Shown: positions 4,050-30,618 of the stretch, piece after piece | How positions within the stretch are numbered: the first letter of the stretch is position 1 | How the letters are laid out: every line of letters starts with the position of its first letter | Assembly (NCBI GenBank): GCA_018985225.1 | Contig: JADGIF010000037.1 | Location: 1 to 30,618 of the forward strand | DNA length: 30,618 nt | Direction of reading: 5' to 3' | Origin: Amoeboradix gromovi X-113 | Lineage: Eukaryota > Fungi > Sanchytriomycota | Made by a program: the position numbers and the translations under genes | The notes under the pieces: generated by a model | What the model was told of the DNA's origin: nothing | What the model saw: the letters and a program-made list of their open reading frames with translations, nothing else | Databases searched by the model: none

Positions 4050-4445
4050 TCATTAGGTATGTCCCGTCTGCCTGAATTGCATTTCCACAATTGGATTTAC
4101 TTGTAAATCAAGTTGACAGTAATTTCGTATTCGTTGTTCGCAGCTCTATTGAACGCTGATAAACTGCTTAAATTCTTATAAAGTTCTCTTCAGATAAGCC
4201 TAAGAAGATTAATGAAAAATCACCATATCTTATGGTAGCATTAGATGAGATAAGGTATCCCATTGACAAACGTCAGACCCTATAGGGTTTCAGATTTTAT
4301 GTACTCAAAGTAACGTCTTGTCTTGCTGATTCAGTCTTGTTAGATTTCAAACACTATTGCCAGTTGTTACGTGCATAAGCTTTAAAAGCTGCAAGCTCAT
4401 CCGAGGAAATTCTTGATTCTCTCGGAAATCAAAACTTTTAAAGAG
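4050..4445 (-). pseudogene. Decayed Fanzor/TnpB remnant (C-terminal half, family A)
   Basis: Colinear fragments on the minus strand: SLKVLISERIKNF (~4443-4405), TLSH (~4255-4244), FIRI*AVY (~4182-4159), NCG...AD/RDI (~4092-4058). Nucleotide similarity to 10200-10250, 22225-22265 and 26690-26725. Confidence 0.6.
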
Positions 4446-4555
4446 AAGTAACTTTATTGAACAACAGTGAAAGATCTACCTGGATAATTCTGCCTCGCGA
4501 AATTATTTAAAATTTAGTGTATATTTTACAGTGTTTCCACCTTGAAACTACTTGA

Positions 4556-4984
4556 ATGAGTAAACAAACCAAAAGACGAACTTGGGATGTAAATGACTAC
4601 AAAAATATGGAGAAAGGCAAAAAAAACAACACTAAACTAAAGTACACAAGAAAGGAAGATCGAGTCACTGCAGTTCTGGATTTGAATTTAGAGAAAGCAG
4701 TAGGAAAACGATTTATAGATTCTACGCAACAAGCAGGTTACATGTGCAAGATATGTAGTTTGTTGTATTCAGATTCTCAGTCATATTTAGATCATATAAA
4801 TAGCAGAATGCATCAAATATCTGCCGGAATAAGTGATATTCCAGAAAAAGTATCGTTGAAGCAAGTAATTGATCGGATTGAATATTGGAAGAATCAGAAG
4901 CCTGAATCGGAAACAGTAGAGCAAGTAAAGAAGAGAGTGCTATCTCATCAATTGGAAATGCGAAAAAAGAAAAAAATCGCGTGA
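4556..4984 (+). CDS. SNU23: Snu23/ZMAT2 U4/U6.U5 zinc-finger splicing factor
   Basis: RRTWD N-terminus; AGYMCKIC...DS.SYLDHINSRMHQ matrin-type zinc finger; SL.QV..R. Confidence 0.9.
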   Translation: MSKQTKRRTWDVNDYKNMEKGKKNNTKLKYTRKEDRVTAVLDLNLEKAVGKRFIDSTQQAGYMCKICSLLYSDSQSYLDHINSRMHQISAGISDIPEKVSLKQVIDRIEYWKNQKPESETVEQVKKRVLSHQLEMRKKKKIA

Positions 4985-5004
4985 TAGAATTATAAAGCCA
5001 TTTT

Positions 5005-5877
5005 ATGTATGAAGTATATGTAGTTGTACTTGAAATGGGGTTTCTTACAGCTGGATTTGCTATAATATGCACTAGTATTAAAGAAATATATTACATCCAA
5101 AACTTGAGATTGAAATTAAAGGTAATGCTGCTTAGTAGAGCACTGATATTGTCGCCAACTTTTGCATGCATGATTTCTGAAAGATTTGTTGCGTTAGAGA
5201 AACAAACATTCACGTATGATCCAAGTACGCTAGCGTCGACATTAGATCTTAATTCAGCAGAGGAAGTGATGATTAATATAAATTCATTTGCAAATGGAAT
5301 GTTGTCAATATGGTTCATGCTTACTTTGAGCACGCTAACCTCAAAGAGGTTTACAAGGTTACAAAGATTCTTCCAAATTACTACTTGCGCTTATTTCTTT
5401 AACAATATGCTTATATACGGTGGGGTATACTATGCCTACCGTCCAATGCATACTTACCTATTTACAGCTCTGGAGTGGGGAATTATTATATTCAATGATT
5501 TTAGAACGCTTAAAATATTATCAACGATTAAGATAGACGAGGCCAAACGAAAGAGCTTGGTTGAAAATGTGAGGAGCTCATACAGGGCTGCATCGTTTTT
5601 TTATGTGGGAATGGGTGCCACGTTTTTTTTCTTAGTTGCATTAAATATATACAGTGTTGCAAGTGTAATCGTGACCTTGTTATGGCTTGTTAGTTCAATT
5701 TATTATAAGAACTCTGCCAAAGTGTTTTCTTATTTGGATTACGTACATATCTTTATAAACTCAACAATAAAGATAGAATCGAACACGGGAGATACCGAGA
5801 TGAAGGTGTACGGAATCACTATGCCTGTCACAGGCCAGCTGGAAGATTCAAGCGGAAATACAGATACAAATAAATGA
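5005..5877 (+). CDS. Hypothetical multi-pass membrane protein
   Basis: 290-aa ORF with about 6-7 hydrophobic segments. Start uncertain (alternative ATGs at 5035 and 5125). Confidence 0.6.
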   Translation: MYEVYVVVLEMGFLTAGFAIICTSIKEIYYIQNLRLKLKVMLLSRALILSPTFACMISERFVALEKQTFTYDPSTLASTLDLNSAEEVMININSFANGMLSIWFMLTLSTLTSKRFTRLQRFFQITTCAYFFNNMLIYGGVYYAYRPMHTYLFTALEWGIIIFNDFRTLKILSTIKIDEAKRKSLVENVRSSYRAASFFYVGMGATFFFLVALNIYSVASVIVTLLWLVSSIYYKNSAKVFSYLDYVHIFINSTIKIESNTGDTEMKVYGITMPVTGQLEDSSGNTDTNK

Positions 5878-6043
5878 ATTTATACAATTTTGCTTGTCCT
5901 CTGGAAAATTTCTTTGAGCCTAGTGCTGTATAACTACTCTTAGAGCTTGAACCATCATTTGCCTTCGATTCTGGAAATCTTGCCACAGCACAGCATTCCA
6001 ATTCCTCAAGTCAGGTCCACTTGAAACTTTTAAAAAGACTCAA

Positions 6044-7430: not shown

Positions 7431-7490
7431 ATTTTTTTATTTACAATGTTGAAGATTTAAAATGTCGAAATTTTCAAGTTAAGAGCTTTT

Positions 7491-7792
7491 GAGACATCAA
7501 ATATAAAAACTAGACCAAGTCGTCTTTAAAGGAGGTGCTCCATGAGGAGGAAATACTAATATTAATAAAAGTCCTTTTTCTTCGTACAACCTGTTTTTGT
7601 TTTCTAATGTCATTCCCCTCTTTAAAATAAGACAAGATGACCCACTCTCTTTCAAATAAGGTCTTTGAGTGTCTAAGCAAAATGTGCAACCAATAAGATA
7701 ATTTAATGTAACTTACTATCGGTTAATACACACTTGAAATAATGATTCAAACTATCTCAGAAAGTTAGTCTAGTTTTTATATTTGGTGTCCC
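7491..7792. mobile_element. ~302-bp MITE-like element with 25-bp TIRs; left 200 nt fold extensively
   Basis: 7491-7515 GAGACATCAAATATAAAAACTAGAC matches the reverse complement of 7768-7792 (GGGACACCAAATATAAAAACTAGAC) at 23/25. Second copy at 27034. Confidence 0.8.
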
Positions 7793-8632
7793 AGATGGCA
7801 GGTTGTACATGTGCATGTCCCCAATTTGTTTTTCTTCAGAGAGACACAACTCGTGTAAGTTCTTCCTTGCATTCCACAATGCCTTACTAGCCATTAACCA
7901 AATAAGAAGGACAGCGTTCTGTTTTAATTCAGTAAAAAAATTTCTAACAGACGGGACATGCACTACAAAAACTAGACAAAACAAAATGTATCCAAATTTC
8001 AAAAATAAACAGTCTGTATAGCTATTCTTTTGCCCTTTCATCCAGTCTTTATTTTAGATTTGTACGGTAACTATTGACTTTATGATTTCAAATACAATTC
8101 AATCAGAGTTGAAAGAAGAGGATTGCCACTTACAAAACATGAAAAGAGAGCGCAATTCCGCTGATGAAGAGAGCAGACCACCCTCAAAACGAGAGGCACG
8201 ATCCAAGTGCAATTACACCTATCAAACCAGCATGAAGTATGATGACAGAGAAAGAAAGAAAGTGCGTTATAAAAAGGTAAAAGAACGGGATAAAAAAGTA
8301 ATTTATTATGGAGATGCAGTCTACTTTTTACAGAGTGTGTCCCAAATGGGGACAAAGTGAAATATCAATCTCGCAGATGTGAAAGTTCGAGCTAGTATAC
8401 CCACTGTGCATCGAGGAATGAGCGCAAGCTATACCTGTTTCCAAGTCACAGAAAGACTTGAGCAAGATGAAAGAATTTATATTCAAGAATAGGATAAGTA
8501 ACGAGCCGTCAACCACGGTATTGGCGGCACATCACGGTAAAACTTAAATGAATATTTAAACTTCACGAAAGAGATGTCTACTTCTGTAGGCGTGCCTAGT
8601 CGGAAGGTTGAAAAATGAGTGAATAATTTATT

Positions 8633-9562: not shown

Positions 9563-9999
9563 TTTTCAATATACAACCTCAATGCTGATTGGTTCTAGCA
9601 TCATCCACCAATTGGTTCACCTTCCGAAAATGTTGAAACGCCCCACCAGTCTAGGAAAATCTTGCCAAACTATCTCGTAAAATTGGCTCGTTTCCGTCTA
9701 TTTGTGCCGATTTAGTGTTTAATATGCCTCTTAACTAATAAGCGACATTTATGTGTTGATAGCAGCGCTCTACACTGATCAGAGACTTGGAGGTCCCGGA
9801 CTATTGAAAGATGCAATTCTATAGTCTTTACTTACGGCAAAAACTGCATAACACTTGAGCATAATATAAAACGGCTTTCTGTTAGATGCTGCATGATGCC
9901 TGCTCTAACGATGGTACCTGGAAGGGATATACAACTTGAAAACAGTGATAAAGAGGCAAAAAGATCATTACAAGCGACATTCTGCGACAGATAAATGAT

Positions 10000-10265
10000 T
10001 CGGCATTTTAGAAAGCGCAAGAGAAATAAACACTAAACCAAATTGAAATGCGAAAATATCAAATAAATTAGAGTTCGCATCAACTGTAGGCCACTTGTGT
10101 AGATACAGTTTAAGCATATTTTTGCCTAGGTTAATATTTCTATGATCTTCATGGTCGCAATTACAACATCTGATGAATTTTCTCGATTGGTGATTGCTAG
10201 TTTCTTTGGAAATTCTCGATTTTCTCGGAGATCAGGACTTTTAAACGAGAGTCATTAACGAGAAC
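10000..10265 (-). pseudogene. Internally deleted Fanzor/TnpB remnant (family A)
   Basis: RLKVLISEKIENF (~10248-10210), then CNCDHEDHRNINLGKNML (10165-10111), a degenerate CxxC..xRDxNAAxNI. Homologous at nucleotide level to 24970-25140, including ~100 nt beyond the motif. Confidence 0.7.
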
Positions 10266-10454: not shown

Positions 10455-11948
10455 TTATTGATCATCATCCTCAGATTCGTCTTTAGTAATCTGAGCTTGT
10501 TCGTCGTACATCCTCAACAATCGCTGGATACTGGTTGTTTCCTGTGCCGATTTGTCATTTCTGATTCGCAGAAATCTGGGAAATCTAAGCGATATCCCAC
10601 TGGTGTGCACTGGACTCTTAGTTAAGTCTGCACATTGTATCTCCCATACATGTTTAGGCTCAACCCACACGTCTGCCTCTAGTTTACATTGGTACTCTTC
10701 TGGTTTCTTGGCTACTTTTAGTGGCATCAATAAATTACTAAAAACATCCAATTCTTCATCCTTAAATCCAGTTCCTAGTTTGCATACAGTCTTATATACT
10801 TCTTCGTCCTCATCCCAAGTACCTACTACAAATGTGCCTAATCCTCCGCTTCTCTTTCCTTTCCCATAAAATGCTCCCATGACCACTAGATCAAGCGAGT
10901 CACCCATTGTGGAGTCTAAATAATCCTTCTTTAGCTTAAACCAATTCAAACTGCGCTTACTTGGCTCATAAGTTGAGTCACGGCCTAGTAATGTTTTCAG
11001 CATTAAACCTTCACATTTATTAAGCACGCTCTCATTCAAGTACTCTGTAATCTGTTCCACGTCAGTGCAGTCCTTGTTTTTTGCAAACTCAAACACATTC
11101 GACCTTTGCTTAAAGTGCTTGTACAGCAGCTCACGACGCTCATTGAACGGGTGCTGCAATAGCGACTCCCCGTTCAGGTACAGCAGGTCAAACGCCACCA
11201 CAATCACTGGTATATCGATAGAGTCCAGCATCACGTTTTTGCGCTTTCTCTTCTGGAGTGCTTGGAACGGCTGAATCCCTTCTATCGGATCGCACGCTAG
11301 GGTCTCGCAGTCCAGAATGTATGACTCAGCTTCTGTTATTGTGGGGATCAGCGCGAGCACATCCGGGTATTTGTCACTCAGGTTCTCGCTGTTGCGGCTG
11401 TAGACCCAGCAGCCCTTTTTGCTGTAATGCAGCTGCGCCCGCTCTCCGTCATATTTGTACTCGCACGTGAATGTCTTGTTTTCAAACCTGTCCAGCACCT
11501 TGGCGATGCCTTTGGTTGGGTGCGCCAGCATGGGCTTGACCGGGATACCAGGCACCAGAACACAGTTGTCCTGCAAAAGCGAGATGCCCACGCTTGGATC
11601 AAGCAGCAGGGGGATTATGAGGTCGAAGGAAGGGCACGAACAATAAACCGACTTCAATACAGACTCTGCTTCTTTTACACTGAAGCTGCTGAACTTGGCT
11701 GCTGCCTGGGAGATGCAGGTGATGAGGGTCTTGTCGCTCAGCCCGATTCGCATCCTGCCACTCAGTATACGAATGAGATACTTGGACTCAACTGCTGTAG
11801 CGGAGCCCAGAAGGACACAGATCTTGTCGATCTTGCGGGACTGGCTGTTCTTCCCGCTGGTAAGAGAGATGTCTACTAGGGTTTTGAACAGGCCGTGGAC
11901 TGTAAGTGGTTTGGGGGCTGACACGAGGATTTGGTTCTGGCGGGACAA
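10455..11948 (-). CDS. CDC9: DNA ligase I (Cdc9/LIG1), apparently N-terminally truncated, no ATG start
   Basis: PMLAHPTKG, EYKYDGERAQ (catalytic Lys), FDLLYLNGE, EGLMLK, KLKKDY, SLRFPRFLRIR.DK. The ORF begins at TTG in the middle of the DNA-binding domain, with an in-frame TAG 13 codons upstream. Confidence 0.85.
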   Translation of the reverse strand: MSRQNQILVSAPKPLTVHGLFKTLVDISLTSGKNSQSRKIDKICVLLGSATAVESKYLIRILSGRMRIGLSDKTLITCISQAAAKFSSFSVKEAESVLKSVYCSCPSFDLIIPLLLDPSVGISLLQDNCVLVPGIPVKPMLAHPTKGIAKVLDRFENKTFTCEYKYDGERAQLHYSKKGCWVYSRNSENLSDKYPDVLALIPTITEAESYILDCETLACDPIEGIQPFQALQKRKRKNVMLDSIDIPVIVVAFDLLYLNGESLLQHPFNERRELLYKHFKQRSNVFEFAKNKDCTDVEQITEYLNESVLNKCEGLMLKTLLGRDSTYEPSKRSLNWFKLKKDYLDSTMGDSLDLVVMGAFYGKGKRSGGLGTFVVGTWDEDEEVYKTVCKLGTGFKDEELDVFSNLLMPLKVAKKPEEYQCKLEADVWVEPKHVWEIQCADLTKSPVHTSGISLRFPRFLRIRNDKSAQETTSIQRLLRMYDEQAQITKDESEDDDQ

Positions 11949-12020
11949 TTGGGTTTCAAGATTAACTGCCCTTTGGCTATTAGTAATCTACTTAGAAATC
12001 CCAAACGTTATATTAAGTAC

Positions 12021-13049: not shown

Positions 13050-13099
13050 GCTTGAGAAAAGTAGACTGGAGGGGTAAAATGGAGGACAAAAAGAAAAAG

Positions 13100-13560
13100 A
13101 AATGTTGATTTATTACATGAGCGGTATCAATAAAAACCAAAAACTATGTTAATTGAATCCTTTCAGACTGTTATACTTACAATAAATCACTATCATCCGA
13201 TAATTAAAGAAAGGTGATATGGGCCACATACGAAATACATTAAAATAGAGAAGATAAAACATGAGAAATTAATACACTATGGTGATTGTGGTTACAGGCA
13301 CAACATTAATGATCATCTAAAGAGTGCTGTAAACGTCGTAGGAAGAATTGCAAAAGTTATAGTATTCGGCAATGTTGTAGAAGTTATAAGCTGGCCCAGT
13401 TTGCCCACTGTGATGTGGCAGTGGATCGAGATGTGAAAGATTGTTACAACAACCTTCCAGTAACAGAAGGTCTACCAAGATAAGTCAAAGCCCAGAATTA
13501 CAAAGAAGAGGAGTTCGCAGCAGCGAGGTGCTGTCTGAGGAACTTGTGACAAATATGTAA
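13100..13560 (+). pseudogene. Decayed Fanzor1-like remnant with 3' hairpin
   Basis: KLIHYGDCGY (~13266-13295). Open frame 13313-13483: SSKECCKRRR...SYKLAQFAHCDVAVDRDVKDCYNNL..*. Hairpin at 13511-13545. Confidence 0.75.
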
Positions 13561-14355
13561 GTTCTTTACCTGGCTAGTTCTGCATTTTAGAGACAAGCAA
13601 ACTAAAAAACTGCTTTGTCTTGTACAGTGTGTCACTGTTGGTTTATGTTTTTCAATTGTTGTTAAATAAGATTATTTCTTTGAACCCTTAAAGAACTTTT
13701 GCGTTGTGTAATTGAGAAGAATATTCCTTTGAATGGCAATAAATAAATCTAACAGTAATTTGGCTACAATTTTACTGCTTTTCTGCCTTGATTGTCTCGG
13801 TAAGATTGTTCAGTTTCCTTTGATACCTTTGTTGAGTATTTGGAGTAGATTTGAATTTACTAAAAAGGAAGATCATTTATTTAACTGGTCCTGCTTTATC
13901 CACTCTTGTGTGCATTTAACCAAACCTTGATTTACCATTCTCCTTTACTAATGTCTTGTCCAATTTAACGTACTTTCATTTCGTTCAAACGAATTACATG
14001 CAGAAATATGTATGTATGTTTCTATGAGTCCATTCGATACATTCGATGAACACAATCTCCGAGTGGACAACAAAATTAAGTGACAAAATGTTTTACGGCA
14101 CAACTTCGTAACGATAATAGTTGGAGCTGTTATTACTAATAAAGAATCAAATTACACAAGACTGAGGAAGAGAAAGGCGGAGATAGCTATGTGATTAAAT
14201 TTTTTTTGGATCAGACATCAATAAAAGACGCCCATCATGGCCCGGTGACATCAGCTAATAGTGCAAAGTATTAACTGGCTTTATCAGCGTCTTTGTAGAA
14301 ATTCTTTATTTTCTACGAGACAAGGACATTTAATGAGGGGGTTGAGATTACTTTT

Positions 14356-16149
14356 ATGAAACGCTTCAAAATCGCAGGTTTGCTGGCTTTGATTTATTTG
14401 TTATCCAACTATGACCATCTCCAGAGTGATACTATCAATTCTACTCATCTTACCAAGACACTTAAGTTCCACCACTTTAACCTAACAGATTTTTCTTTCA
14501 TTCACTCAAGTGATTGGCATTACAGTCTACACAAGACTAACAACAACATCTACAAGGTACTCAAGAATCCTCTTCCTGTTAACTTCCATTTTGTCACCGG
14601 TGATCTAGTAGATAGCAAAAGTAAAGATGGCACCACATCTCATCAATATGAATTCGAAGAGAATCAAGTAAATCATATATTATCTACTTTTCATGACAAG
14701 TATAAGCTCCAATATCCTGATTTTAAAGGGTTCTTTACAGTTCTTGGTAACCATGATATATATGATACTTTGGAACATCAAAAAGAACGCCAACATCATA
14801 TTATTGATACTAATCTTGTCAAGATAGTAATGATTGATAGCGGTCCATTTGGGCTTGGTAGACCACTTAATTTCTTTGGTTTTATTGATGATTTGGTCCT
14901 AGATATCATTGAGATGAGTCTAGATAACAAACCCATCATAATTATGGCGCATTATCCATTGTCCACTACTTTTTATTCAAAGAAACTGTTGAAAACCCTA
15001 AGGAATTATAAATATCCTGTTTATTATCTCTGTGGCCATTTGCATTATTTAAAGGAACCTTTTGGACATTACCTACAAACTACGTACAACGGTATTGTTG
15101 AACTAGAAGTGGGCGACGTTAAAGAACATTCTGCTAGTAGGTTATTTCACGTCACTGAGAAAGGAGTGTCCTTTGTTAATTTGAATAACATAAATTATAC
15201 AAACGCCATAATTACTTGGCCTTTGGACTCTAAATTTATGGTCAACGATCCACCTAAATGGGATAACTGTATACATCTCGTGAATTACGATGCCCATACA
15301 CTTCATATTTATATTAACAACGAACTAGTGCATTCGATACTGAACGCTGAAAACAAGAAATATTTTAGCTGCAACAAATCATATGAAATTGCAGAATATG
15401 TTAAAGTACACGCTATCGGTAATAATGTGCATAACCACACTGTGTATATACATACTGTTAAACCCAGTAGCTTAGACTGGAAAGAAAGAGCGATGAATTA
15501 TTTGTTCAGTTTGAATTATGCGGATAGTTTCATTCCAACATTTTATCTTTACTATATTTTACAATTTATGCTGTTAGCCAGTTTGCTCTACAGCAAAGGT
15601 AAGCATGGTCCAAATTGGATGGGCCTTAGCTCTATGAAATACACATATAGCAAGGTTTGGATAGTATTTCTTATTACATCACTGTCATTTCTGTTTATGC
15701 CAATGTTTTATGGATCATTTGCCAAGGATAACAACAGATGTAGCGTATTCGAAGCACCATTCTATCCATTTGGAACTCAATATAATGGAGAAACTGTGTT
15801 TCAATTTGATTTCTTAATTTGGGCAAATTTGTTTTTGTATTACGAAAACTTTGTGATATTCATGGGATATCACATACACATAAACAGAAATAATATAAAA
15901 AACAAATGGGTCGTCATGATATATCCCGCACTAATAATATACATGAAGTATAGGTTACTTTGGAATATGTTTATATGGTATGTGTACGAGGACGCCAACT
16001 GCTTTCAAACAAGGTGGTTGTACTACATGTGGAATTCATTTGGATTCATGCAATTAACCCTGATGCCCGTATCGTGGATATTTTTAAGATACCTTCATTT
16101 AATGACAACCAACAAGTTATCTCTTGGATTTCGACCAAAAGATTTATAA
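14356..16149 (+). CDS. TMEM62-like metallophosphoesterase with C-terminal TM helices
   Basis: Calcineurin-like motifs SDWH, TGDLVD, GNHD, HYP, CGHLH, plus PLNFFG and ELEVGD; hydrophobic C-terminal third. Confidence 0.85.
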   Translation: MKRFKIAGLLALIYLLSNYDHLQSDTINSTHLTKTLKFHHFNLTDFSFIHSSDWHYSLHKTNNNIYKVLKNPLPVNFHFVTGDLVDSKSKDGTTSHQYEFEENQVNHILSTFHDKYKLQYPDFKGFFTVLGNHDIYDTLEHQKERQHHIIDTNLVKIVMIDSGPFGLGRPLNFFGFIDDLVLDIIEMSLDNKPIIIMAHYPLSTTFYSKKLLKTLRNYKYPVYYLCGHLHYLKEPFGHYLQTTYNGIVELEVGDVKEHSASRLFHVTEKGVSFVNLNNINYTNAIITWPLDSKFMVNDPPKWDNCIHLVNYDAHTLHIYINNELVHSILNAENKKYFSCNKSYEIAEYVKVHAIGNNVHNHTVYIHTVKPSSLDWKERAMNYLFSLNYADSFIPTFYLYYILQFMLLASLLYSKGKHGPNWMGLSSMKYTYSKVWIVFLITSLSFLFMPMFYGSFAKDNNRCSVFEAPFYPFGTQYNGETVFQFDFLIWANLFLYYENFVIFMGYHIHINRNNIKNKWVVMIYPALIIYMKYRLLWNMFIWYVYEDANCFQTRWLYYMWNSFGFMQLTLMPVSWIFLRYLHLMTTNKLSLGFRPKDL

Positions 16150-17638: not shown

Positions 17639-18253
17639 ATGTTGGTATTTCAAGCTATCATGTGCACATCATTTTTATTTCTTTTAGCCGATATACCTTT
17701 ATTTTTCAAATCTAGATTATTGCTAGGTTTAGTTTTCTCATTGTCTCTTTATTCCTGGGAAATTGATACTCTGTGTACTTTTTTTATTTTGTGGTCAGTA
17801 CCAATTGTCACACCGTCCATCTTGCTATTCGAATTGTTGAATTCTGATTTAAATACACCAGATAGAGTTTATGTTCCACAGTTTAAATATAGATGGCTTC
17901 TATTCATACCTATTATTTTAAATCTATTTGTTTTAAAGGTTCTAAGTAGAATGACTGTTTATGTTTACCTAGCTACACAATTGGTTTTATTTGTATCTGT
18001 GTTTATATTTATTCGACGATCATTCAATTACCTTCCAGTTGAAATTATATATAATTCTTCCTTTGTTATGTTTGATGTGCTGTTTTCCTACTGTTACTTT
18101 CAGATCAATATAATTGATGTAGACTACCACTCAACGATAAATTATTATTCAATTCGCCTTACTATTTTTACCTGGATATTCTGGTTTATAGTTCCATTTT
18201 TGCTTCACAGATATACTTGGAATCTACTGGTACGGTTATTACACAAGTCCTAG
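17639..18253 (+). CDS. Hypothetical very hydrophobic membrane protein
   Basis: 204-aa ORF that is almost all TM-like segments. The start may be ATG 17660. Confidence 0.55.
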   Translation: MLVFQAIMCTSFLFLLADIPLFFKSRLLLGLVFSLSLYSWEIDTLCTFFILWSVPIVTPSILLFELLNSDLNTPDRVYVPQFKYRWLLFIPIILNLFVLKVLSRMTVYVYLATQLVLFVSVFIFIRRSFNYLPVEIIYNSSFVMFDVLFSYCYFQINIIDVDYHSTINYYSIRLTIFTWIFWFIVPFLLHRYTWNLLVRLLHKS

Positions 18254-18302
18254 CAGAGCTATGCCTGCAAAATATTTATAACGTGCTGGCTGCTTTTTCA
18301 AT

Positions 18303-18560
18303 AGCTTGTTTTGCTAATTGATGAGACTCTCATATACTACCATCTCTTTAAGGGCCACTGAGGTAATACCAAGGATTACTAGAATGCGTGGTAAATAGGA
18401 CAGGAGCCTGTTTCCTGGTGTGTGTATGCAGCGGCTAGTTCACTAGAAGAATGCGTTCTATGTGTCGCGGTAATGCGTTAGTACGTAACATATTCTGGCT
18501 GTGGTGATATGAAGACATTTGCCTTAAATGGAGTGAGTATTCTGATTATTCAACTAAAGT
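18303..18560 (+). pseudogene. Decayed Fanzor/TnpB C-terminal remnant
   Basis: LVLLIDE (18305-18325), then FLVCVCSG*...CRGNALVRNIFWL (RuvC-III-like at 18466-18492). Confidence 0.5.
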
Positions 18561-18620
18561 ATTCTAGAAAGTGGGCATATTCCAGAGGTGAAACAGAAGT
18601 AATGCCGATAAATGGTTTAT

Positions 18621-19199
18621 TTAATTAGAATCGATGACTGTTTTAGCATTTTTTAAGATCTCATCGACTGTCCATTGGTCACCAGCATTCTTTCCATAAT
18701 ATATCTTCACTATTTTCCCGTTTGAGCAATCAATTATGGCATCCATTGGCAATAATTTCGATCCTCCTTCTTCTTTTTTAGGATTAGAAAATTGTTTTGT
18801 GATTTTTTTACCAGCTATAATTGCTTTGATCACGCTGAATTTCATCATTTTAATCATACTTCCGTTTTTACAACCAAAAGCTTTATAAATCTGCTTAGAC
18901 GGATCTGCTACGAATTCTAGACCAGCAGACCATGTAGCTTTTCCCTGGTTCTCTTGAATTACTTTTTTTTCGGAATGTAATACAATCACCTCACGAATCA
19001 ATGCATCCTTGAGATCCTTTAGATGGGTAGATATCGCTACCATTTTTAAATTACAAATGGGACATCCGGAGAATCGTCTCAAGCTTAAGTGAATCAAACC
19101 ATTGCTACCCTTGAGATCAATCTTAGCATCTGAGATTGTTGTTATGCTATCTATTGGTACGATGTCACCCTCTTGTAAATGCTTTTGAAAACTTACCAT
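18621..19199 (-). CDS. AhpC/TSA-like (peroxiredoxin-like, thioredoxin fold) protein
   Basis: HLSLRRFSGCPICNL (CxxC), ADPSKQIYKAFG, LPMDAIID..GKI...YG....DQW. Probable ATG at 19199. Confidence 0.85.
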   Translation of the reverse strand: MVSFQKHLQEGDIVPIDSITTISDAKIDLKGSNGLIHLSLRRFSGCPICNLKMVAISTHLKDLKDALIREVIVLHSEKKVIQENQGKATWSAGLEFVADPSKQIYKAFGCKNGSMIKMMKFSVIKAIIAGKKITKQFSNPKKEEGGSKLLPMDAIIDCSNGKIVKIYYGKNAGDQWTVDEILKNAKTVIDSN

Positions 19200-20850: not shown

Positions 20851-20989
20851 ATTTCAGCTTGTTTATTATTAATAAGTGAGTACCGCATATAAAAACTCTC
20901 CTCATTGTTTTGAATAGGGATTTTTTGGCAAAACTTTCAAGAAATCGACACTTTGGGAGCCATTTCTTGCAGTTCTGCCTTTTCATAGG

Positions 20990-21400
20990 CCCGCAATGAC
21001 TTCTTAGAACCTGGTCTTTTATAGATGTGTTCACCTCCCTATCACTTGAAAGGCAGTTAGTCATGAACTTTGCCTTTCACCACCACCTTCAATTTTTTTT
21101 GCTTGCAGCTGATAGGGAGGGGTCCATATTCATCTTCTTTATATCAAAAAGATGCCAGTATTAGTGCTGTTGCGAAATATGGGTTCCATCGCCTGGAGGT
21201 CCAAATTAGGTCAGTCTACCTTGATTCAGATGAATAATTTAACTAGAAAAGTACGCCCAAAATATTGTTTAGAGACTGTTGACAAAAACAATTTACTTGA
21301 AATGAGGAACGTAGTTTTGATACTTCTTATATAGAATCTGTGTATTCCGTAGCTTGAAGTGTTTACACGACCGAAATTATTGCTCGGCTCTCTATTAGAA
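20990..21400 (-). pseudogene. Decayed Fanzor1-like remnant
   Basis: Minus strand, in order: RFYIRSIK, GDG, STNTGI, EDEYG...SCK...VHD*L (~21136-21054), SDREVNTSIK (~21046-21017). Confidence 0.65.
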
Positions 21401-21859
21401 AACTTTAGATGTTTACTAATATGATCCTTGGAGCTATCTCCCAGTAAATAACAAGCTTTTATTTTGTTATTGATGTTCTTCCTCATCTTATTATTGAAAG
21501 ACGAATTACGAAAAAATTTATCTTCCCACTTTCTAAAGCTTTTTTGATGATGATCTAAATATTTTGGTAAATTCTGTACTTTCTGAAGGTCCTTCTTATA
21601 TATAATTCAAAAACTCCTGTGCAAGCAGTTTACAAAACTAATTAATAATGACGCATTTCATCAAAAAAATCCCCAGCTGTGATTTATTGCCGTTTTGCAC
21701 TGCAGTTCTTGAATTTTGTAAAATCAATCATTTATCGAGAATCCGTATGTATTTTTATATAATCACATGACTTTTCTAGATTTTTCAAATACCTTAAATT
21801 CTCGATATTCTTTATTTTCACAAATAGTAAATCAAATCTAAAGAAATAACCAACAGTTA

Positions 21860-22152
21860 CAGTATACATTCATCAACGTTGAGGAACTGGTCCAAACATG
21901 GACCAATTAGATGTCTTTCAACCCGTTCTCAAAAGAGATCAACGATAAATAAACCTGTTAACCATTTATTTAATTATTCGTATGTCTTGCGTGTGCAAAA
22001 ACGCTATATCTTAACACTTGTTATGCATGTACAAGCTGTAGCAATCGTAAGAAAACCAATTTAGAAACCTGAACCTGTACAAATTGTCATTTGGAAATAG
22101 ATAGAGACCATATGGCTGCAAGGAACATATACATCAAGTATATGCATCCTTA
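21860..22152 (+). pseudogene. Fanzor/TnpB remnant with near-intact zinc ribbon and RuvC-III
   Basis: One frame reads KTLYLNTCYACTSCSNRKKTNLET*TCTNCHLEIDRDHMAARNIYIK (DRD at 22100-22108). Upstream LSTRSQKR...VNHLF. Confidence 0.88.
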
Positions 22153-22275
22153 TTTAATCCCGCCTCAGGGTAGTGAAAGCGTGAGCAATCACTGTAATGG
22201 AGCATCTAGCATTGCTAGTTTCTCTGTGGAGATTCTCGATTTTCTCAGAAATCAGGACTTTTAACGGGGAGTTGA
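22153..22275 (-). pseudogene. Fanzor family A remnant (bridge helix/RuvC-II region)
   Basis: LKVLISEKIENLHRETSNARCSITVIAHAF. About 85% identical over ~103 nt (hand count) to 26691-26793 in inverted orientation. Confidence 0.75.
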
Positions 22276-22521
22276 AAATTAATGTTCGTATGACTCCTTA
22301 ACGAGGAGGGTAAAACAAACATGACACAACAAAACCTGGACTTTTTGAGCTGACAGTAGATTTATTGAATAAATATTAGTAATAAACAATCGGATTATGT
22401 TAAGTTGCGTACCAAACAGTCTGTCTTGTTCATAAATCGTGAACTAAATTAGTAATTCGCCAATCAACTCACTTAAAAATTCATTTATAAAAACGCGGTT
22501 GGAGCCATCTTCAAGTTTCTC

Positions 22522-24780
22522 ATGTCTTCCCAAAACAACCAAAAATCATTTGCTGCTGCGTTGAAGACCACTAGAGACGATAATGATATTCAGAAACAAC
22601 AAAGGTTATATAACGGAACGATGAGCGCTGTTGAAGGAACATTTAAAGAAAAACTGTTGGATGACTACATGCATGCCCATACAACCTTGTCTATGTTAGG
22701 CTTAGATACATCTAAACTTGACTTGGGATCTGAGGAAGTAATTACTCCAACGAAAACTATAGGTTTTGGTGATTTAGAAGCAATAGATAAAGAATCACGA
22801 TTTCTGATTATCGAGGCTTCGGATAATAAGGTTATAAACGCTTCTATCTTAAATGCAATCGGTAACTACAAGTTAGAGACTTACCGTAAAAAAGAAAGTT
22901 TGATGCAAATTGGATTTGTGAACTACGAAGATGCGGTTGAGGTTAAGGACAAGGTGGTTAGAAAAGGAAGCATTGATCTTGATAATGGTGAATCAGTCAA
23001 AGTTAATGTATACTTTGGTAAAACTCTCGAGAGCGATCATTCTAATATGTCCACTCGTTCTTTATACATTGGCAACTTACCGACATCTATTTCAATCAAC
23101 ACCCTTTATCAACTATTCCAGCCTTACGGCTCTATTGAAAGTTGCCGTGTACTTACAAACAAAAATTGCGGATTTGTAAATTTCGAGAATGATTTAGATG
23201 CTCTGAGCGCTAAAAAAGCATTAAATGGGTTTGATTTGTCTGGAAATGCGCTAAAGATTAACTTTGCAAAGGCACCCGTGGCTACTAAAACCGTGGAACC
23301 TCTATCAAGTCCCATAAGAAGCGCCTTAAAATTAAATACTACTATTCAGCCGATGTCTCCCGGTGGCTATTCTTCAAATAGCGCTCAGTTCTCACCTAGA
23401 GCAATGACTCCCCTAACCTTTTATCAAAACAGAATACAGCCTAACATTCCAAAAGATATGGGAACCGACCAGAGTGTCGTTTCTCCACTGATAACTCCAG
23501 CAGCATTTGGTGACTTTCAGGCACCGCAAGATGAATTTCAGGATGCCTTGCCGCCAATTAATGAGCTTAAAAAAATGGATCAAGGAAAACTGCGCGAATA
23601 CCGTCGAAAGTTGGATGGTAATCATTCTCAGCGTGATTTTGAATTTATATTCAAGGAGTTAATCGATGACATATTACCGTTGTCAGCAGATTATATCGGT
23701 AATACGATTGTTCAGAAATTAGCAGTTAAAGGTAGCAATGAAAAGAGACTAAGAATAATTAATGCACTCAGCACTCATTTTGCAACTTTAGGTGCACATA
23801 AACACGGCACATGGGTAATTCAAAAACTTATTGATATTGCAGACACTGAAGAGCAAATGAGTGCAGTTTGCAGTGCAGTTAAGGCATATGCGCCACCCCT
23901 TATGATTGATCAAGTAATTCATTATTTAATTTAGTTTGGTAACTATGTTGTGCAATGTTGTTTAAGACTAGGATCTGCAAACAATCAGTTTATTTATGAT
24001 GCAATGCATAACAGATGTCTGGATTTGGGCCAGAGCAGATTTGGAGCAAGAGCTATGCGGGCTTGTTTGGACTCACAATACGCTGAAATGAAGCAAAAGA
24101 AACACGTAGCACTAGCTATTATTCGTAATGTATTATCGCTGTCAACTAATCCTAATGGTAATCTACTAGTCAACTGGTTATTAGACTCTTCTAATCTGCC
24201 TGGAAGGTACAGAGTGGTTGTACCACAAATAATTTCTCATTTGGTGCAACTGTGTACTCATAAACTAGGCTCCCAAATAGTGTTTAAGATAGTACAGCAA
24301 ACTCAGGATTTGGATGCCCGTCAAACTGTTCTTAAAGAAATGTTCTTTGGTACAGTTTCCACGCCAAGTGGTCTAAATGTACAGGAGTATCCGATCCTTG
24401 AAGATATACTCTCAGACCAGATGTATGGTGCTCCGTTTATTCAGCGAGTATTTAATTCTATATCTGATCCGGAAGAGAATCGAGTTTTACAGGAGAAAGC
24501 AAACCAAGTGATGATGAGTTTGAATGCGTCGCAAGCACCGGGGCATCGGTATATCCAGCAAGCTTATGCCGCTTCTCACTTAGCTGCCCTGTCCTCAATG
24601 CAGAAGCAGCAAGCGCCTCCTGCCCTTAATATCCTCTCTCCAGGTGTAAACTCTTCTTTTGATGCTGTTGTATCTCCAAGATCCCAGAATTTTTCACCTT
24701 TTAGTCCAAAGTCAGAGTCTTGGAGACAGTGGACACCTTCTTCTTTTGATGCTTCTAAGAAGAGTAATGATAGCCAATAG
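22522..24780 (+). CDS. Jsn1/Puf2-type Pumilio protein with RRM; 2 exons (22522-23913, 23935-24780)
   Basis: RRM SLYIGNLP...CGFVNF; Puf repeats DYIGNTIVQK, HKHGTWVIQK, DQ|FGNYVVQC, SRFGARAMR, HKLGSQIVFK. Confidence 0.92.
23914..23934 (+). other. 21-nt spliceosomal intron GTAATTCATTATTTAATTTAG
   Basis: Removal restores the canonical Puf repeat DQFGNYVVQCCL. Retention reads an in-frame TAG. Confidence 0.92.
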
Positions 24781-24969
24781 GTTTAAGTAAATTATTTTAA
24801 TTTCTTTTGAGATAATGAAATTAGAACTCGTACCCCAGTGCATTTGTTTTAATTCAAGAGCCACTTTAGAGTAATGCTTTACTTATTGTCAGGTACATTC
24901 AGGCTTCTTCTTGAATATTAATCTCGGATCGTGTAGCGACGTAACGGCAAAGCGTTGTGTGAAATTAAA

Positions 24970-25200
24970 TAATGGCATTTTTAGGAAAGATAGGTTGCAA
25001 TGATCTGGTACGCTAAATATGAATATTAGAATGAGTTCAGAGTTCACAATTCTTAATTGTGGATAACTCGGCTAGAAACCATTGAAGCATATTTTTGCGT
25101 TGGTCAATATCCCTATAGTCTTCGTGACAGCAATTGCAGAATTCAAACCATTCAAAGGTATAATGTGCTGAACTTCAGCAACTCTGATAAACCTCGAGTT
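24970..25200 (-). pseudogene. Fanzor family A C-terminal remnant
   Basis: RFIRVAEV, then FEWFEFCNCCHEDYRDIDQRKNMLQ (~25156-25082); homologous to 10000-10165. Confidence 0.72.
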
Positions 25201-25439
25201 CTTTTCATTTCATAAAATGCTTATAAGGTGTATTCCTTTACTCAAGTTACTCAATGTCTGATATTCGTTCCATTAGAAAGTATGAGACCCATTCTGAAAA
25301 AACGTGTTCGTTAAAAGTAGAAGGAACACCCAGAAACCGCACTATATTATCCATCATCATTAATTCATCATTTGCAAGACAACAAAGAAACGAAAAGTCA
25401 GACAGATAAAGTAATTGAGTAAGAGCAAAAAAGATGATA

Positions 25440-25670
25440 ATGAAGCACTAGAAAGAATATTAAAAACATCAAGACAGATATGAAATAATAGTCGGTTGAG
25501 ATATTGCAACATGTGATCAAGTACTAATCAGCCAACCTATTTTGAAAGAGATATGGCTAGTGCATTTTCATATTGAGAAAAAAGTTTGATGGTATATTAT
25601 GGGACTGAGTCTTTCCAGGAGGTCCTCCGACTTGTAGTTGGGGACATTTTCTGAAAATGGGTCCCAATTG
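25440..25670 (+). pseudogene. Fanzor C-terminal remnant with downstream hairpins
   Basis: RLRYCNM*SSTNQPTYFERDMASAF (25493-25567). Stems at 25601-25626 and 25638-25666. Confidence 0.65.
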
Positions 25671-25715
25671 ATTAATTAAAAACATCCAATTTATTATAAT
25701 AGAAAGGGGATTACA

Positions 25716-26252: not shown

Positions 26253-26299
26253 TTGTAAACTCCTAAAATGCTCTCGATGTTCAAAAGATTTACTTCTTA

Positions 26300-26800
26300 T
26301 GGACGCACATACCAGCCATCTACAATTAAGAGAAAGAGGAAATGGGGATTCCTCAGTCGCATGTACAATTCACCGGGAAGGAAAATACTGTTTAGAAGAC
26401 TGCTTAAAGGAAGAAAAAGACTATCTCATTAACCTGAACTAGTAAATCTTTAAATTCAACTCGTAATATTTTGATGCCATGCACCCTATAGTGTTTATTT
26501 GATTTCAAACTATGATGTTAAAACATTTTTGAGATTGGTTATTGTAAAAGATGCAAATTTATTGCAACGCTTTGAAGTAACAGCGAAGATAGTTTTGAGA
26601 ATTAGTTAAATTCTAGAAATAAATGATTTTGAAAGAAATTTATTACATAATAATGGCAAATTTAACACTTGGTAGTCAATACTCCTCACTGAAAGTCCTG
26701 ATTTCTGCCCAAATCGAGAATATTCACAGCGAAATTAACAATGTTAGTAGCTCCATTACTGTGATTGCTCACGCTTTCACTATCTTGAGGCGGTATTACC
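26300..26800 (+). pseudogene. Longer decayed Fanzor family A remnant (WED to RuvC-II)
   Basis: [11 protein letters not shown] (26362), ISNYDVKTFL (~26502-26531, a decayed DPGVRTFL RuvC-I), LKVLISAQIENIHSEINN (26689). Confidence 0.65.
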
Positions 26801-27033
26801 TTTAGTTACTCTTTAGATTTAACATGTTCTAGATTACAACGCTTGATTCCATTTATCATTTGGGGAATGGAAGAAAATCGAGTACTTACAAGATTAGAAA
26901 ATCTGGAAAACACTATATATCAAGAAATTATGATTTAATCACGAAAGATGGTTTATCTAACAAATAAGGAAAGCTGTTAATTAATCTGGATCTGTTTCCA
27001 ATGAGTCATCACAAGTAGTTCTTTGCGACTATT

Positions 27034-27331
27034 GAGACACCAAATATAAAAACTAGACCAAGTCGTCTTTAAAGGAGGTGCTCCATAAGGAGGAAATAAT
27101 ATTATTAATAAAAGTCCTTCTTTCAAACCAATTTTCTTTCATTAATGTCATTCCCCTCTTTAAAATAAGATAATATGACCCACTATCTCTTCTAAATAGT
27201 GAAGGTCTTTGAGTGTCTAAGCAAAATCTGCTTATTCTTAGACGATACTTTTTTTCTGTTCCATTTTCGTATATTCATACACTCATCAGCACAGATAATT
27301 TATTTTTTTAAATGCTAATTTTTGATGGCCC
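27034..27331. mobile_element. Second copy of the ~300-bp TIR element
   Basis: 27034-27231 aligns in conserved blocks to 7491-7687. Degenerate right end gctaatttttgatggccc(aga) lies at nearly the same distance (298 vs 302 bp). Confidence 0.75.
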
Positions 27332-27521
27332 AGAATCTTGACGAATTGATTACAATTGTATTGTGGTTTTGATTTTTACAAATCTTAAAGAGCAGAACAA
27401 GTTTTAAAGACTTATTATAATGAGAAGCCGAAATAGGAAATAACACTCTGAAGCAGTTATCATAAACGTCAACCGGAGCAGAGCTCTCTTAAGGATCTGG
27501 TTAAAAGTCTCAAGTTTCTCC

Positions 27522-28679
27522 ATGTTCAAAATACATTTCTCAAAATTTAATGACGAATTCTATAACCATGCCATTGAAAAACTTACAGTAGCATTAAATC
27601 AAAAGAACAAACCGCAGCAGATTGTGGATGATATAATAGTCGAAGAGCTGGATTTGGGAACTTTACCACCAGCAATTGAGATACTAGAAATCGGAGAGCT
27701 TGATTTGTCCAGATTCAGAGGTATATTCCGGATCACTTACAGTGGAGATGCTTTTATTGTTATTAGAACCAAAATACAAGCAAATCCGTTTGTGAGTAAA
27801 CGTGGTGTAGCAGCCAATGCGCCGCTGGTAGTTCCAATAAAGATAAGGATTAGCAGATTGCGAATAAAGGGAATAGTTGGCCTTGTAATAGATAAAAGCA
27901 AGGGCATCACTGTCTCGATGAAAAACGAACCGTTGGAGAGCGTCTTGATTAGCAGTAGCTTTGACGAAACTCCAATGATTGCGAATTACTTACAGAATGA
28001 AATAGAGCAGAAGTTGCAGCTTCTGCTCACAGATGAGATACCTAGACTCATACATGAATACAGTTTAAAGAATTTCAATCAGGAGGAGGACGAAGTGGTA
28101 GAGGAGGTCTTGAGCGCATCCACTAGTGATCAGGAAGAATCATATGAATTAACTCAGGAAGATCTGCTGAATATGCAGAAGAGGTTTATAAGCATCAACG
28201 AGAAGTTCGAGGAGGACAAGGCTGGATTTTCAGAAATCACATCTATTTCTGATACTCACTCAATTCTGAGTAACGCAAGCACAGGGATAGTAAGAAGAAC
28301 TGAACTACCGCAATCGCTATCGAGAAGATTTAATAAAAGTAAAAGCATGGATAGCGAATTCGCTACTAAAAGGCCAAGTGTTGACAAAAGCGTAAATGAG
28401 CTGCATCCTATCAAAGAACTTAACAAGTCGCAGCCTGCTGTTTTTAGTAGAAGGTTGAGTAACTTATTAATGAGCAACCAGTCTCTATCACCGTTTCACC
28501 GTAATTATGAAAATTCAATGTTTAAGGCGTCACCCATAAAAAACAAGAACAAATCCGTTTACAGCGAAAGAACTAGTACTATGAGCAGGAGAAGTACTGA
28601 TCAAATGACGCTTGTGAAACCGAAAGTGCGATTAAAGAAGAAGCGAGTAATTGACTTGGAGAGATACTTTGGGAGCTAG
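27522..28679 (+). CDS. MDM34: ERMES subunit Mdm34 (N-terminal SMP domain)
   Basis: ALN...KP..IVDDI.VEEL.LG..PP..EILEIGEL...RFRGIF...Y.GDA...TKIQANP; KGIT...KNEPLESV..SSSFD. Confidence 0.92.
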   Translation: MFKIHFSKFNDEFYNHAIEKLTVALNQKNKPQQIVDDIIVEELDLGTLPPAIEILEIGELDLSRFRGIFRITYSGDAFIVIRTKIQANPFVSKRGVAANAPLVVPIKIRISRLRIKGIVGLVIDKSKGITVSMKNEPLESVLISSSFDETPMIANYLQNEIEQKLQLLLTDEIPRLIHEYSLKNFNQEEDEVVEEVLSASTSDQEESYELTQEDLLNMQKRFISINEKFEEDKAGFSEITSISDTHSILSNASTGIVRRTELPQSLSRRFNKSKSMDSEFATKRPSVDKSVNELHPIKELNKSQPAVFSRRLSNLLMSNQSLSPFHRNYENSMFKASPIKNKNKSVYSERTSTMSRRSTDQMTLVKPKVRLKKKRVIDLERYFGS

Positions 28680-28702
28680 CTACATTGTTAGCTGAATGGT
28701 AT

Positions 28703-29146
28703 TTATTGGTGACAAAGATACGCTTCTTTATCTTGGTGCTCCACTGGCTGCAATGCGTGCGCCACACCAGTGCCAAGAACAATAAATAAGATCACATAAA
28801 AATTGAATGTCATCATTGCTAGCATGAGCAATATGCCAATAAAAGACCTAATTGTAGTTTTTAGCGCATTCACGTATCTGTCCTGCTTTTTGCCAAGTTT
28901 CCTGAACTGATATCTACCAAGTAAGTCAATCGAGAAACTAGTGACGAAGAGAGCAAGCAATACTGCAGCAAATGCAGCCGCGCTATCGATGGTCCAGGTA
29001 TCAACTAAAATCGCAAATCCTGAAGTCTTAAAGTTAAACGAGGTCCCCATAGCCCCCATTGACATTGCTTCTGAGCTAGAGTTACTTTCGGATGACATAT
29101 TTGTACCGTCCATATGCATATGCTCTGAATCCATTGAGATTATCAT
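28703..29146 (-). CDS. Ctr-family copper transporter
   Basis: Met/His-rich N-terminus, F...W, LMLAMMTFN (MxxxM), GTGVA. The start may be ATG 29134. Confidence 0.9.
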   Translation of the reverse strand: MIISMDSEHMHMDGTNMSSESNSSSEAMSMGAMGTSFNFKTSGFAILVDTWTIDSAAAFAAVLLALFVTSFSIDLLGRYQFRKLGKKQDRYVNALKTTIRSFIGILLMLAMMTFNFYVILFIVLGTGVAHALQPVEHQDKEAYLCHQ

Positions 29147-29469
29147 TTACTCTTGTTTTGTATTGTACAAGTTAGTGGTAATTAATAATCTGATTGGTTC
29201 CTCTCAATAGGGTCTCCTCAGGCCCCTCATCAAAAAGTTTGGACATTATGTTGGATAAGTGTACCAAAGTGCTATACCATCAAAGAAGCCATAGTATAAG
29301 CAGTGGAACTCTGTTTATTAGAACCAATTTGACATATCCGCAGTGCTCCAATAAACGAACATGTAAATATTTCAAAATTTGAGCGATTTTTGATTGGCCA
29401 CAATCTTTTTGAAAACTCACCACAACTGGCATAAAGCGCTTGTTAGAGCATCAGAGGTGATCAACTCTT

Positions 29470-29720
29470 CATCGAGAGTCCCGGTTTGTTTGAAAATCAA
29501 GAATTCCGACAAACAAAAATTAATAAGAAAGTTTATTGAGTCATAAATATTATTTAACTCTAGAAGATGATCAATTTGAGATGCAGAGTTTGTGCGATCG
29601 CTACAGATGATCTATAGAATTAAAGTAGATCACTTTTACATACTGCTTGTGCAGTAAAGGATATGAATTAAATTTGTGATTTGTACTTTCAAGTGACCAA
29701 TTGTTGCAAATGAATTATCT
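29470..29720 (+). pseudogene. Highly decayed Fanzor family A remnant
   Basis: agagtcccggtttgtttgaaaatcaagaattcc resembles the family A KVLISEKIENF block. Downstream: RIKVDHFY / CSKG / TFK.. TNC fragments. Confidence 0.45.
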
Positions 29721-30429
29721 TTCCATTAATGTAGCAGCTCCTGGGCACTGAAGCATGCATTAATTGCTTATTAGCGATTTCTTTAGAATTAAGATTCAAG
29801 TACTGACCCGTTTACCACTTAAAAAGAACAAAACTCGCGTTTTGTGCCATTGGAAGTATCTGAAAAAGTATTATATGAAAATAAAGCGTCATGCAACCAC
29901 GATAAATACTTTATTAGATTGAGGTCTAAAGCTGCGCAAAAAATAAATAAACCCTTAAAAGTGAATTCCTCAAAAGGTAGATTCTTCAAACAAAGAAGTG
30001 TTGTATTTTTCCACCTATTTTCTAACAGCAACTCGCTATCGAAAACTACTTCTGTCCTGTCATATATTTTATAATTACACATTCATGTTTCGATATAAAA
30101 ACACATCTCAGTTGGTAAACTGGCGTATCCTGGACTTCTAGAAAGGTCTAAGCAGTTTCCAGTGAGATTTTACTGGAAATCGCATGCTGGTTTTTCACCA
30201 CTCAGACGCAAAACTTAATTATGCAAAGACCAAAATTGACGCACTATAATATTTGTCTAAGGTAAATTCAGAATGGAGAAAGGAAACAGCTTGACTATTT
30301 TCTTGAATAAATCATTTATCGCGAATTTGTATGCATTATTGTATAATTTCAAGACTTTTCCAGATTTTTCAAATAGCTCAAATACTAGATATTCTTCCTT
30401 TTCGCAGATGGTAAATCAATTCTAAATAA

Positions 30430-30618
30430 ATAACTAACAAGTACAGCATACAAAGACATGATCTTATACACTTACCATCGTTCAATACGAGCCAGCTGCC
30501 AAGTACCTTGTCGAGCAAGGTCGCAAGAAACATGGCTACAATGTCCCATTACGCATTCAAGGAACGCTTGAAGTTCAAGTGTAAGCAAAGAGGAAAGACG
30601 CTAGTTGAATGTAATGAA
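30430..30618 (+). mobile_element. Well-preserved Fanzor (TnpB-like) fragment, 5'-truncated and running off the window
   Basis: 63 stop-free codons: ITNKYSIQRHDLIHLPSFNTSQLPSTLSSKVARNMATMSHYAFKERLKFKCKQRGKTLVECNE. In-frame TAA at 30427. Confidence 0.9.

Follow-up and report, generated by a model that had tools for sequence, protein, structure and literature searches.

Why do the gene spacers of a reduced parasite genome carry so many pieces that resemble the tail of Fanzor and TnpB, the RNA-guided nucleases? The question is raised by a stretch of 30,618 nucleotides, hereafter the window and the whole scope of this analysis, from Amoeboradix gromovi, a sanchytrid that parasitizes algae and has a reduced genome of 10.5 Mb with 36.27% GC (PMC8371127). 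An original prediction, made from the sequence by eye, had listed 12 Fanzor/TnpB sites and described the spacers as a graveyard of nuclease genes. We find 14 Fanzor-derived elements plus one lone terminal inverted repeat (TIR), or one per 2.2 kb, close to the predicted density of about one per 2.5 kb. Nine elements belong to a family derived from IS607-type Fanzor2 elements (family A), two carry a TnpB/Fanzor-type tail (family B), and three derive from Fanzor1 (families C and D). About 60% of the window is genes, and Fanzor-derived DNA accounts for 3.7 kb of the remaining ~12.2 kb. This share, ~30%, bears out the claim that remnants make up much of the non-coding DNA, and eight of the nine spacers longer than 700 bp contain an element. 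Extrapolated roughly to 10.5 Mb, the genome might hold a few thousand. The elements themselves are likely to be non-autonomous mini-transposons from at least two Fanzor-carrying parents, amplified in trans and exchanged with a giant virus.

It is first necessary to consider whether most listed sites are random motif matches in AT-rich spacers, with two real fragments only. Strict regular expressions for the signature motifs quoted in the prediction match almost nothing in the window, PDB sequence searches with window fragments returned no matches, and a hidden Markov model (HMM) of 82 viral Fanzor1 proteins produced no significant match there. An HMM of 34 full-length Fanzor2 proteins, applied to all six frames, is significant at 22016-22144 (+, 40 bits) and 30433-30618 (+, 64 bits), where the maximum for shuffled sequence is 6.8 bits. 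General profiles, whether or not combined with the proposed frameshift-tolerant alignment, thus see two spots only, an outcome that by the criterion given with the prediction would overturn it. However, comparison of the window with itself reveals several repeat families dispersed in the spacers, and contigs of a single public read run stack up on three of them; closer reference sequences were therefore sought. Family-specific protein and DNA models from these closer relatives recover all 14 elements and restore the predicted density. Models built from other copies find additional loci far above shuffled maxima, which refutes chance for at least 11 loci, and the read contigs show that the families are highly repeated. 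Even though three listed sites (26300, 13100, and 20990) fail, chance is hardly a credible explanation for the set.

Eight of the 12 sites are supported, and a ninth, 4050, is supported in part: the motif quoted there finds no backing, but positions 4389-4448 hold a right end of family A (21 bits, control maximum 6). Sites 22153 and 30430 are confirmed as Fanzor2. Site 21860 is real element DNA, but it encodes the head of the IS607 recombinase TnpA and not Fanzor (24 bits, control maximum 7.8). Sites 10000 and 24970 are minus-strand family B copies, 18303 and 29470 are old minus-strand family A copies, and 25440 is a Fanzor1 remnant. Scores at 13100 and 20990 stay at the control level, and 26300 is ruled out because it falls in the gene for ribosomal protein bL34 (26268-26432, +; Pfam PF00468, E = 2.3e-19). 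Elements at 7491-7968, 14243-14340, 26682-26976, and 27034-27334 had been overlooked.

Family A consists of amplified internal-deletion derivatives, 0.3-0.6 kb long, of an IS607/Fanzor2 element. Their layout begins with a left end directly after CAG, continues through a stump of the TnpA helix-turn-helix (HTH) domain and the Fanzor2 C-terminus, and closes with a right end in GAGGAG. The copies and their parts are as follows.

21703-22271, plus strand: mini-element with complete ends, junction class A3; its left end follows CAG and its right end is ..GGGGAG; many Logan contigs lie on it
21825-21974, plus strand: IS607 TnpA N-terminal MerR-like HTH stump; 24.3 bits, 46% identity to the intact TnpA of contig L001
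22016-22264, plus strand: Fanzor2 zinc ribbon, RuvC-III (DRD), and tail; one internal stop; overlaps the candidate omegaRNA
30287-30618, plus strand: copy of subfamily A1 (junction YSI/QRH) with Fanzor2 RuvC-II region, Pro motif, and alternative Glu; truncated by the window end
26682-26976, minus strand: shortest derivative, 295 bp, with left end, ~18 first TnpA codons, and right end/omegaRNA region
29465-29934, minus strand: old copy with both ends; left end (29935) 21 bits, right end (29513-29464) 13 bits, control maxima 7.3 and 6.0
18245-18640, minus strand: old copy; CAG left end (18642) 9.2 bits, control maximum 7.3; TnpA-like head; RuvC-II-region remnant, body p<0.005
4370-4448, plus strand: right end alone; 4389-4448 at 20.9 bits with a model from other copies
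10180-10251, plus strand: right end alone; 10193-10251 at 32.2 bits
14243-14340, plus strand: right end; 14253-14339 at 18.1 bits; marginal candidate left end near 13968
7792-7968, minus strand: two tandem units of Fanzor2 zinc-ribbon pieces (match 7855-7789), cut by a family C TIR

The end models were built from two or three copies; the extra right ends score 13-32 bits where controls reach at most 6, and left-end controls reach at most 7.3. All five window copies with a left end start directly after CAG, and right ends close with GAGGAG or a variant in both window and viral copies. An inverted-repeat scan found no arm pair linking the two ends. The original prediction saw no transposase in the window, but TnpA heads are present, as judged by a profile of 33 unrelated viral IS607 elements (control maximum 7.8 bits). 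This serine recombinase survives as the HTH stump only, its catalytic domain being absent from all window copies. The Fanzor2 assignment is supported by a Pro-type RuvC-II, the alternative Glu, a C4 zinc ribbon, and the RuvC-III RD. Motif scans and the Fanzor2 HMM detect no RuvC-I (DPG) or N-terminal Fanzor fragment in the window. Because RuvC-I is missing from every copy, none can act as a nuclease or cut DNA. The zinc-ligand cysteines are conserved like an average position (0.90 versus 0.89), and the copies decay about neutrally.

At 14340-14356, the right end of the copy at 14243-14340 stops 15 nt upstream of the point where translation of a phosphoesterase gene starts, and element DNA may supply the promoter or 5′ untranslated region of this gene.

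Are these copies the worn-down remains of many full-length insertions? According to such a view, each Fanzor element inserted whole and was then trimmed because the genome of this parasite was shrinking under a strong bias toward deletion. The genome is indeed reduced to 10.5 Mb (PMC8371127), several loci are right-end-only or badly decayed, and several distinct breakpoints exist. A protein search with the piece at 22073-22261 returned ~20 short A. gromovi open reading frames (ORFs) and one full-length Fanzor2 (P0021). In a second search, A. gromovi ORFs of 99-213 amino acids with the same tail, most of them 76-94% identical, formed 51 or more clusters (63 sequences), and even the longest lack a complete RuvC triad. 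Aligned, these ORFs have a common Fanzor2 RuvC-II/zinc-ribbon/RuvC-III tail, ahead of which the TnpA start is fused at a few fixed junctions. The same junctions occur on different contigs: A1 at window position 30433 and in P0063 and P0095, and A2 in 10 proteins. Independent trimming fits poorly with this sharing, with the loss of the middle while both ends stay, and with the failure to find N-terminal or RuvC-I fragments in the window. We therefore consider the graveyard quite unlikely; the common TnpA-Fanzor junctions instead mark amplified, non-autonomous deletion derivatives. Read contigs on families A and C number in the thousands, with a depth peak at 22091-22287 over a family A copy, and this depth is not taken as copy number. 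The predicted long-running invasion is consistent with copies of mixed age, from the 76-94% identical young ones to old ones that are barely detectable.

In the EukProt EP00835 proteome (P0001-P0107), family A fragments account for at least 60 of the proteins predicted for A. gromovi, and in one of these (P0016) the fragment shares its reading frame with an RRM protein to which it is fused. Such annotations inflate the gene count of this species.

Where are the intact relatives? The original prediction spoke of intact members elsewhere in the genome as possible editing-nuclease candidates. Protein searches found none in the host, and intact candidates are instead located in giant-virus-like contigs. 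P0021 is encoded in contig L001, and its gene overlaps that of an intact TnpA (Resolvase E = 3e-16, plus HTH), the protein to which the window stump is 46% identical. The ends of this element are CAG| and AGGAG|, and among PDB entries P0021 matches ApmFz2 best (9b0l, E = 1e-21). P0022 (contig L002) and P0098 (contig L214, from another sample) are Fanzor2 elements that lack TnpA, with ends CAG|CTT and AGGAG; the L214 unitig breaks exactly at its AGGAG right end. In a midpoint-rooted tree built from the C-terminal regions of 118 Fanzor2 proteins (139 columns), the fungal copies fall into one group that nests with P0021, P0022, and P0098 (100/99) and has P0022/P0098 as its sister (99/82). Contigs L205-L213, L001, and L002 come from JACCDR01 and JACCDU01, and L214 is from SRR33452769. 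The family A right-end pattern had no match in metagenomes, and families A and C and the intact Fanzor1 element described below had none in IMG/VR.

The giant-virus-like contigs are undescribed; they encode capsid, D5, a ribonucleotide reductase with an intein trace, a TBP-like protein, and YqaJ, and they have both Fanzor families aboard. Their host is possibly a zoosporic fungus.

A second parent is indicated by families C and D, which hold Fanzor1 remnants; those of family C lie within ~30-bp TIRs that start with GRG.

7491-7792, minus strand: family C, 302 bp; a Fanzor1 C-terminal remnant between GRG-TIRs of ~30 bp
27034-27334, minus strand: second family C copy, left TIR decayed; Fanzor1 tail at 27131-27268, 41% over 46 amino acids to the L210 protein
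12-70, no strand assigned: lone family C TIR-like end; 10.2 bits, control maximum 6.7
25330-25700, plus strand: family D repeated segment without defined ends; Fanzor1 RuvC-III remnant at 25493-25564, hairpins downstream

The GRG-TIR pattern matches four times in the window and zero times by chance. A search of metagenomes with this pattern retrieved nine contigs, several of which encode the major capsid protein of nucleocytoplasmic large DNA viruses, D5 primase, ribonucleotide reductase, and thymidylate synthase. One of them, L210, has a complete 2.07-kb TIR element with a single 642-amino-acid ORF, and its right TIR is identical to a window TIR at 28 of 28 positions. The motifs of Fanzor1 occur in order in the ORF (TDG 321, DPG 357, RuvC-II Gly 531, alternative Glu 569, CxxC 577/603, and RD 615), and the invariant columns of 20 viral Fanzor1 proteins are kept. 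Its C-terminus matches the window at 27268-27131 (41% over 46 amino acids) and at 25493-25564 (58% over 24 amino acids), both exceeding all 20 shuffled controls. Contig L208, which encodes P0022, bears the ends of an L210-type element too; the two families thus occur together in the same virus-like DNA. The flanks of family C are mostly AT-rich and end in T. Together with the GRG termini, by analogy to described elements (PMC3627910), they suggest a Sola2-like parent for families C and D.

In ~30 fungal contigs, and in viral contigs too, family C TIRs repeatedly lie 0-60 nt from an end of family A or are nested in it. Examples are read contigs that join window 22261-22273 to 27032-27039, window 26976/27034, 7792, L002 337-452, and L214 1-85, and a family C TIR is found in viral contigs 13 nt ahead of a family A left end. 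Either targeting or sites tolerated by both families might account for this proximity.

Family B is a pair of copies on the minus strand.

10042-10191, minus strand: TnpB/Fanzor-type zinc ribbon with a RuvC-III-like tail (ESM Atlas, hhalign)
25011-25165, minus strand: second copy, forming a repeat pair with 10042-10191

The two are 70% alike (E = 4e-10). ESM Atlas assigns a TNB-domain score of 0.96 (PF07282 clusters; 29 of 30 matches), and hhalign against a Fanzor2 alignment gives E = 0.0015. By these sequence comparisons, family B carries a tail of the TnpB/Fanzor type, composed of the zinc ribbon and RuvC-III.

How might such elements have come to fill the spacers? The parent of family A would be an IS607-type element whose serine-recombinase TnpA overlaps Fanzor2. 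Internal deletions would fuse the start of TnpA to the 3′ part of Fanzor while retaining the ends, and TnpA, working in trans on these intact ends, would then have multiplied a few such derivatives (junctions A1, A2, and A3 and one very short form). Crossover probably takes place at the AG dinucleotide within CAG sites, given that IS607 elements recombine at matching dinucleotides (PMC10711439). The parent of families C and D would be a Fanzor1 element that had GRG-TIRs of 30 bp, used AT-rich 4-bp targets, and was moved in trans by a DDE transposase. Amplification would have come in several waves of different age, which would explain why highly similar young copies coexist with barely detectable old ones, and insertions would survive only between genes. 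The C-terminal motifs of Fanzor would recur because they adjoin and overlap the part retained in a mini-element, its right end and omegaRNA region, and not because the protein works. Finally, a giant virus of A. gromovi or of a related host probably exchanged elements with the fungus, as suggested by giant-virus-like DNA that carries intact elements of the parent type whose ends match.

Several points weigh against this scenario. The analysis covers a single window, and the family-specific models are partly derived from A. gromovi itself, a circularity that leave-out tests limit but do not remove. Protein searches, which are limited by length and word size, found neither an intact host Fanzor nor an intact host TnpA, and there is no Sola2 DDE transposase in the window or in L210; the mobilizing enzymes are therefore putative. 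The two family C copies of the window have no target-site duplication. Moreover, the designation of the L210 ORF as a Fanzor1 relies on its motifs and on a profile match that is colinear over 289 columns but weak (E = 0.026). Pfam and PDB sequence searches do not recognize this protein, its AlphaFold model is of low confidence (pLDDT 53), and the top Foldseek matches, PpFz and SpuFz, are not significant (E = 0.039).

Might the mini-elements have a function of their own? They could be omegaRNA-only 'ghost' loci whose varied flanking guides load an intact host or viral Fanzor, thereby creating a large RNA-guided repertoire. No other part is retained as often or is as abundant as the right end, as seen in four right-end-only loci and in the read-depth peak noted above, but binding by a transposase explains this retention equally well. 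Ghost omegaRNAs of Spizellomyces punctatus are functional in vitro (PMC10432273). Right ends in the fungus pair CCUC with GAGG, which has a counterpart in CCUA/UAGG of the viral elements; both sides change, and the sequences are too few for covariation. Fold z-scores of the right ends are modest for window copies (-1.9 to -0.3) and better for viral copies (-1.5 to -3.2). A guide-target search of the window and the viral contigs matched flanks to CAG-adjacent sites no better than 11-12 of 14 positions, which is the chance level, and the intact host Fanzor that would be loaded did not appear in the protein searches. We regard a guide reservoir as unlikely. A further idea is a split host-virus form of OMEGA, short for obligate mobile element-guided activity, in which thousands of host mini-elements with cognate ends supply guides to the intact Fanzor1 and Fanzor2 of a giant virus of sanchytrid-like fungi, or to a rare host nuclease, and viral enzymes mobilize the mini-elements. 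This proposal is very unlikely to be correct.

The interpretation as trans-amplified mini-transposons can be compared with known systems, and each element type is already known. The IS607-type Fanzor2 elements ACa-1, ISvMimi, and ApmFz2 (Bao and Jurka 2013, PMC3627910; Yoon et al. 2023, PMC10711439) resemble family A in having TnpA overlap Fanzor2, no TIR or target-site duplication, and a short end dinucleotide, and with the intact relatives they share DPG, the Pro-type RuvC-II plus alternative Glu, the zinc ribbon, and DRD. Unlike them, family A has been amplified to hundreds or more mini-elements of 0.3-0.6 kb in a fungal nuclear genome, and no intact A. gromovi copy emerged from protein searches. 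The tested Fanzor2 proteins use GGG, CCG, or TAG as target-adjacent motifs (TAMs), whereas the family A ends would imply an AG core and, by analogy, a predicted TAM of 5′-CAG. The Spu-1 Fanzor1 element of S. punctatus (Saito et al. 2023, PMC10432273) is like that of L210, being ~2.1 kb with one ORF of ~640 amino acids and 30-nt inverted repeats, but family C TIRs start with GRG and have AT-rich 4-nt flanks. S. punctatus has 19 full-length Fanzor genes and 134 ghosts (PMC10432273), and these ghosts, like the mini-elements here, are short ORF-less derivatives with both inverted repeats and the right-end region. In contrast to them, A. gromovi copies retain the Fanzor tail and are much denser, and the only intact Fanzor1 gene found is borne by a viral contig. 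The Sola2-Fanzor1 chimeras DFa and PPa of dictyostelids (PMC3627910) also place Fanzor1 within TIR elements, with AWWT-type 4-bp targets that family C may share, and often have the transposase deleted; their TIRs are 12-21 bp rather than 30 bp, and family C differs further in that no Sola2 transposase was seen.

The A. gromovi genome paper (PMC8371127) does not mention repeats or transposons, our literature search found no paper combining Amoeboradix with Fanzor, and the supplements of two Fanzor surveys do not list A. gromovi. Within the literature searched, A. gromovi is new as a host, and so are the scale reached in so reduced a genome and the finding that an IS607 element was amplified in a fungus in the manner of miniature inverted-repeat transposable elements. 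Giant-virus-like contigs that hold intact relatives of both the Fanzor1 and the Fanzor2 type, with ends that match, are likewise new. That roughly one-third of the non-coding DNA of the window is Fanzor-derived is unexpected for a reduced 10.5-Mb parasite genome. For studies of TAMs, omegaRNA structure, and the end requirements of IS607 in a eukaryote, the copies would constitute a natural collection of element ends that is unusually large. Matching Fanzor1 and Fanzor2 elements in fungus and giant-virus DNA bear on the proposed viral spread of Fanzors, and this sequence kinship points to virus-fungus traffic and to candidate gene-editing nucleases. Three putative intact nucleases are P0021, P0022/P0098, and the L210 ORF, with a CAG TAM predicted for the Fanzor2 proteins.

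Several regions of the window look Fanzor-like by eye and receive no support from profiles (13.2-13.5k, 20.8-21.1k, and 21229-21606), and left-end candidates at 3845 and 13163 score no higher than shuffles. At 13165-13514 (+) and 20898-21076 (-), GAGGAG comes after DRD/DRE-like motifs, an arrangement also seen where family A elements end on the right, with control-level scores; these might perhaps be further old IS607 subfamilies. The region at 21229-21606 (-) comprises 126 codons without a stop and has a GD..EP motif that recalls the RuvC-II of Fanzor1.

The window as a whole has 36.6% GC, is dense in genes, and has few introns, and eight of its proteins match EukProt entries exactly; host genes include radial-spoke, DNA ligase, DEAD helicase, MnmA, PUF, Fcf1, and Ctr. 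Rfam and tRNA scans of the window gave no matches. The DNA ligase I ORF (10458-12000) has a GC-rich stretch (49-52% versus 36%) and starts inside the N-terminal domain. An RRM+PUF gene (22477-24777) is divided into two long ORFs by a lone in-frame stop at 23932-23934, which might reflect an intron, readthrough, or an assembly error. The bL34 gene on the plus strand is small, lies head-to-head with Fcf1, and is shorter than the usual ORF-length cut-offs.

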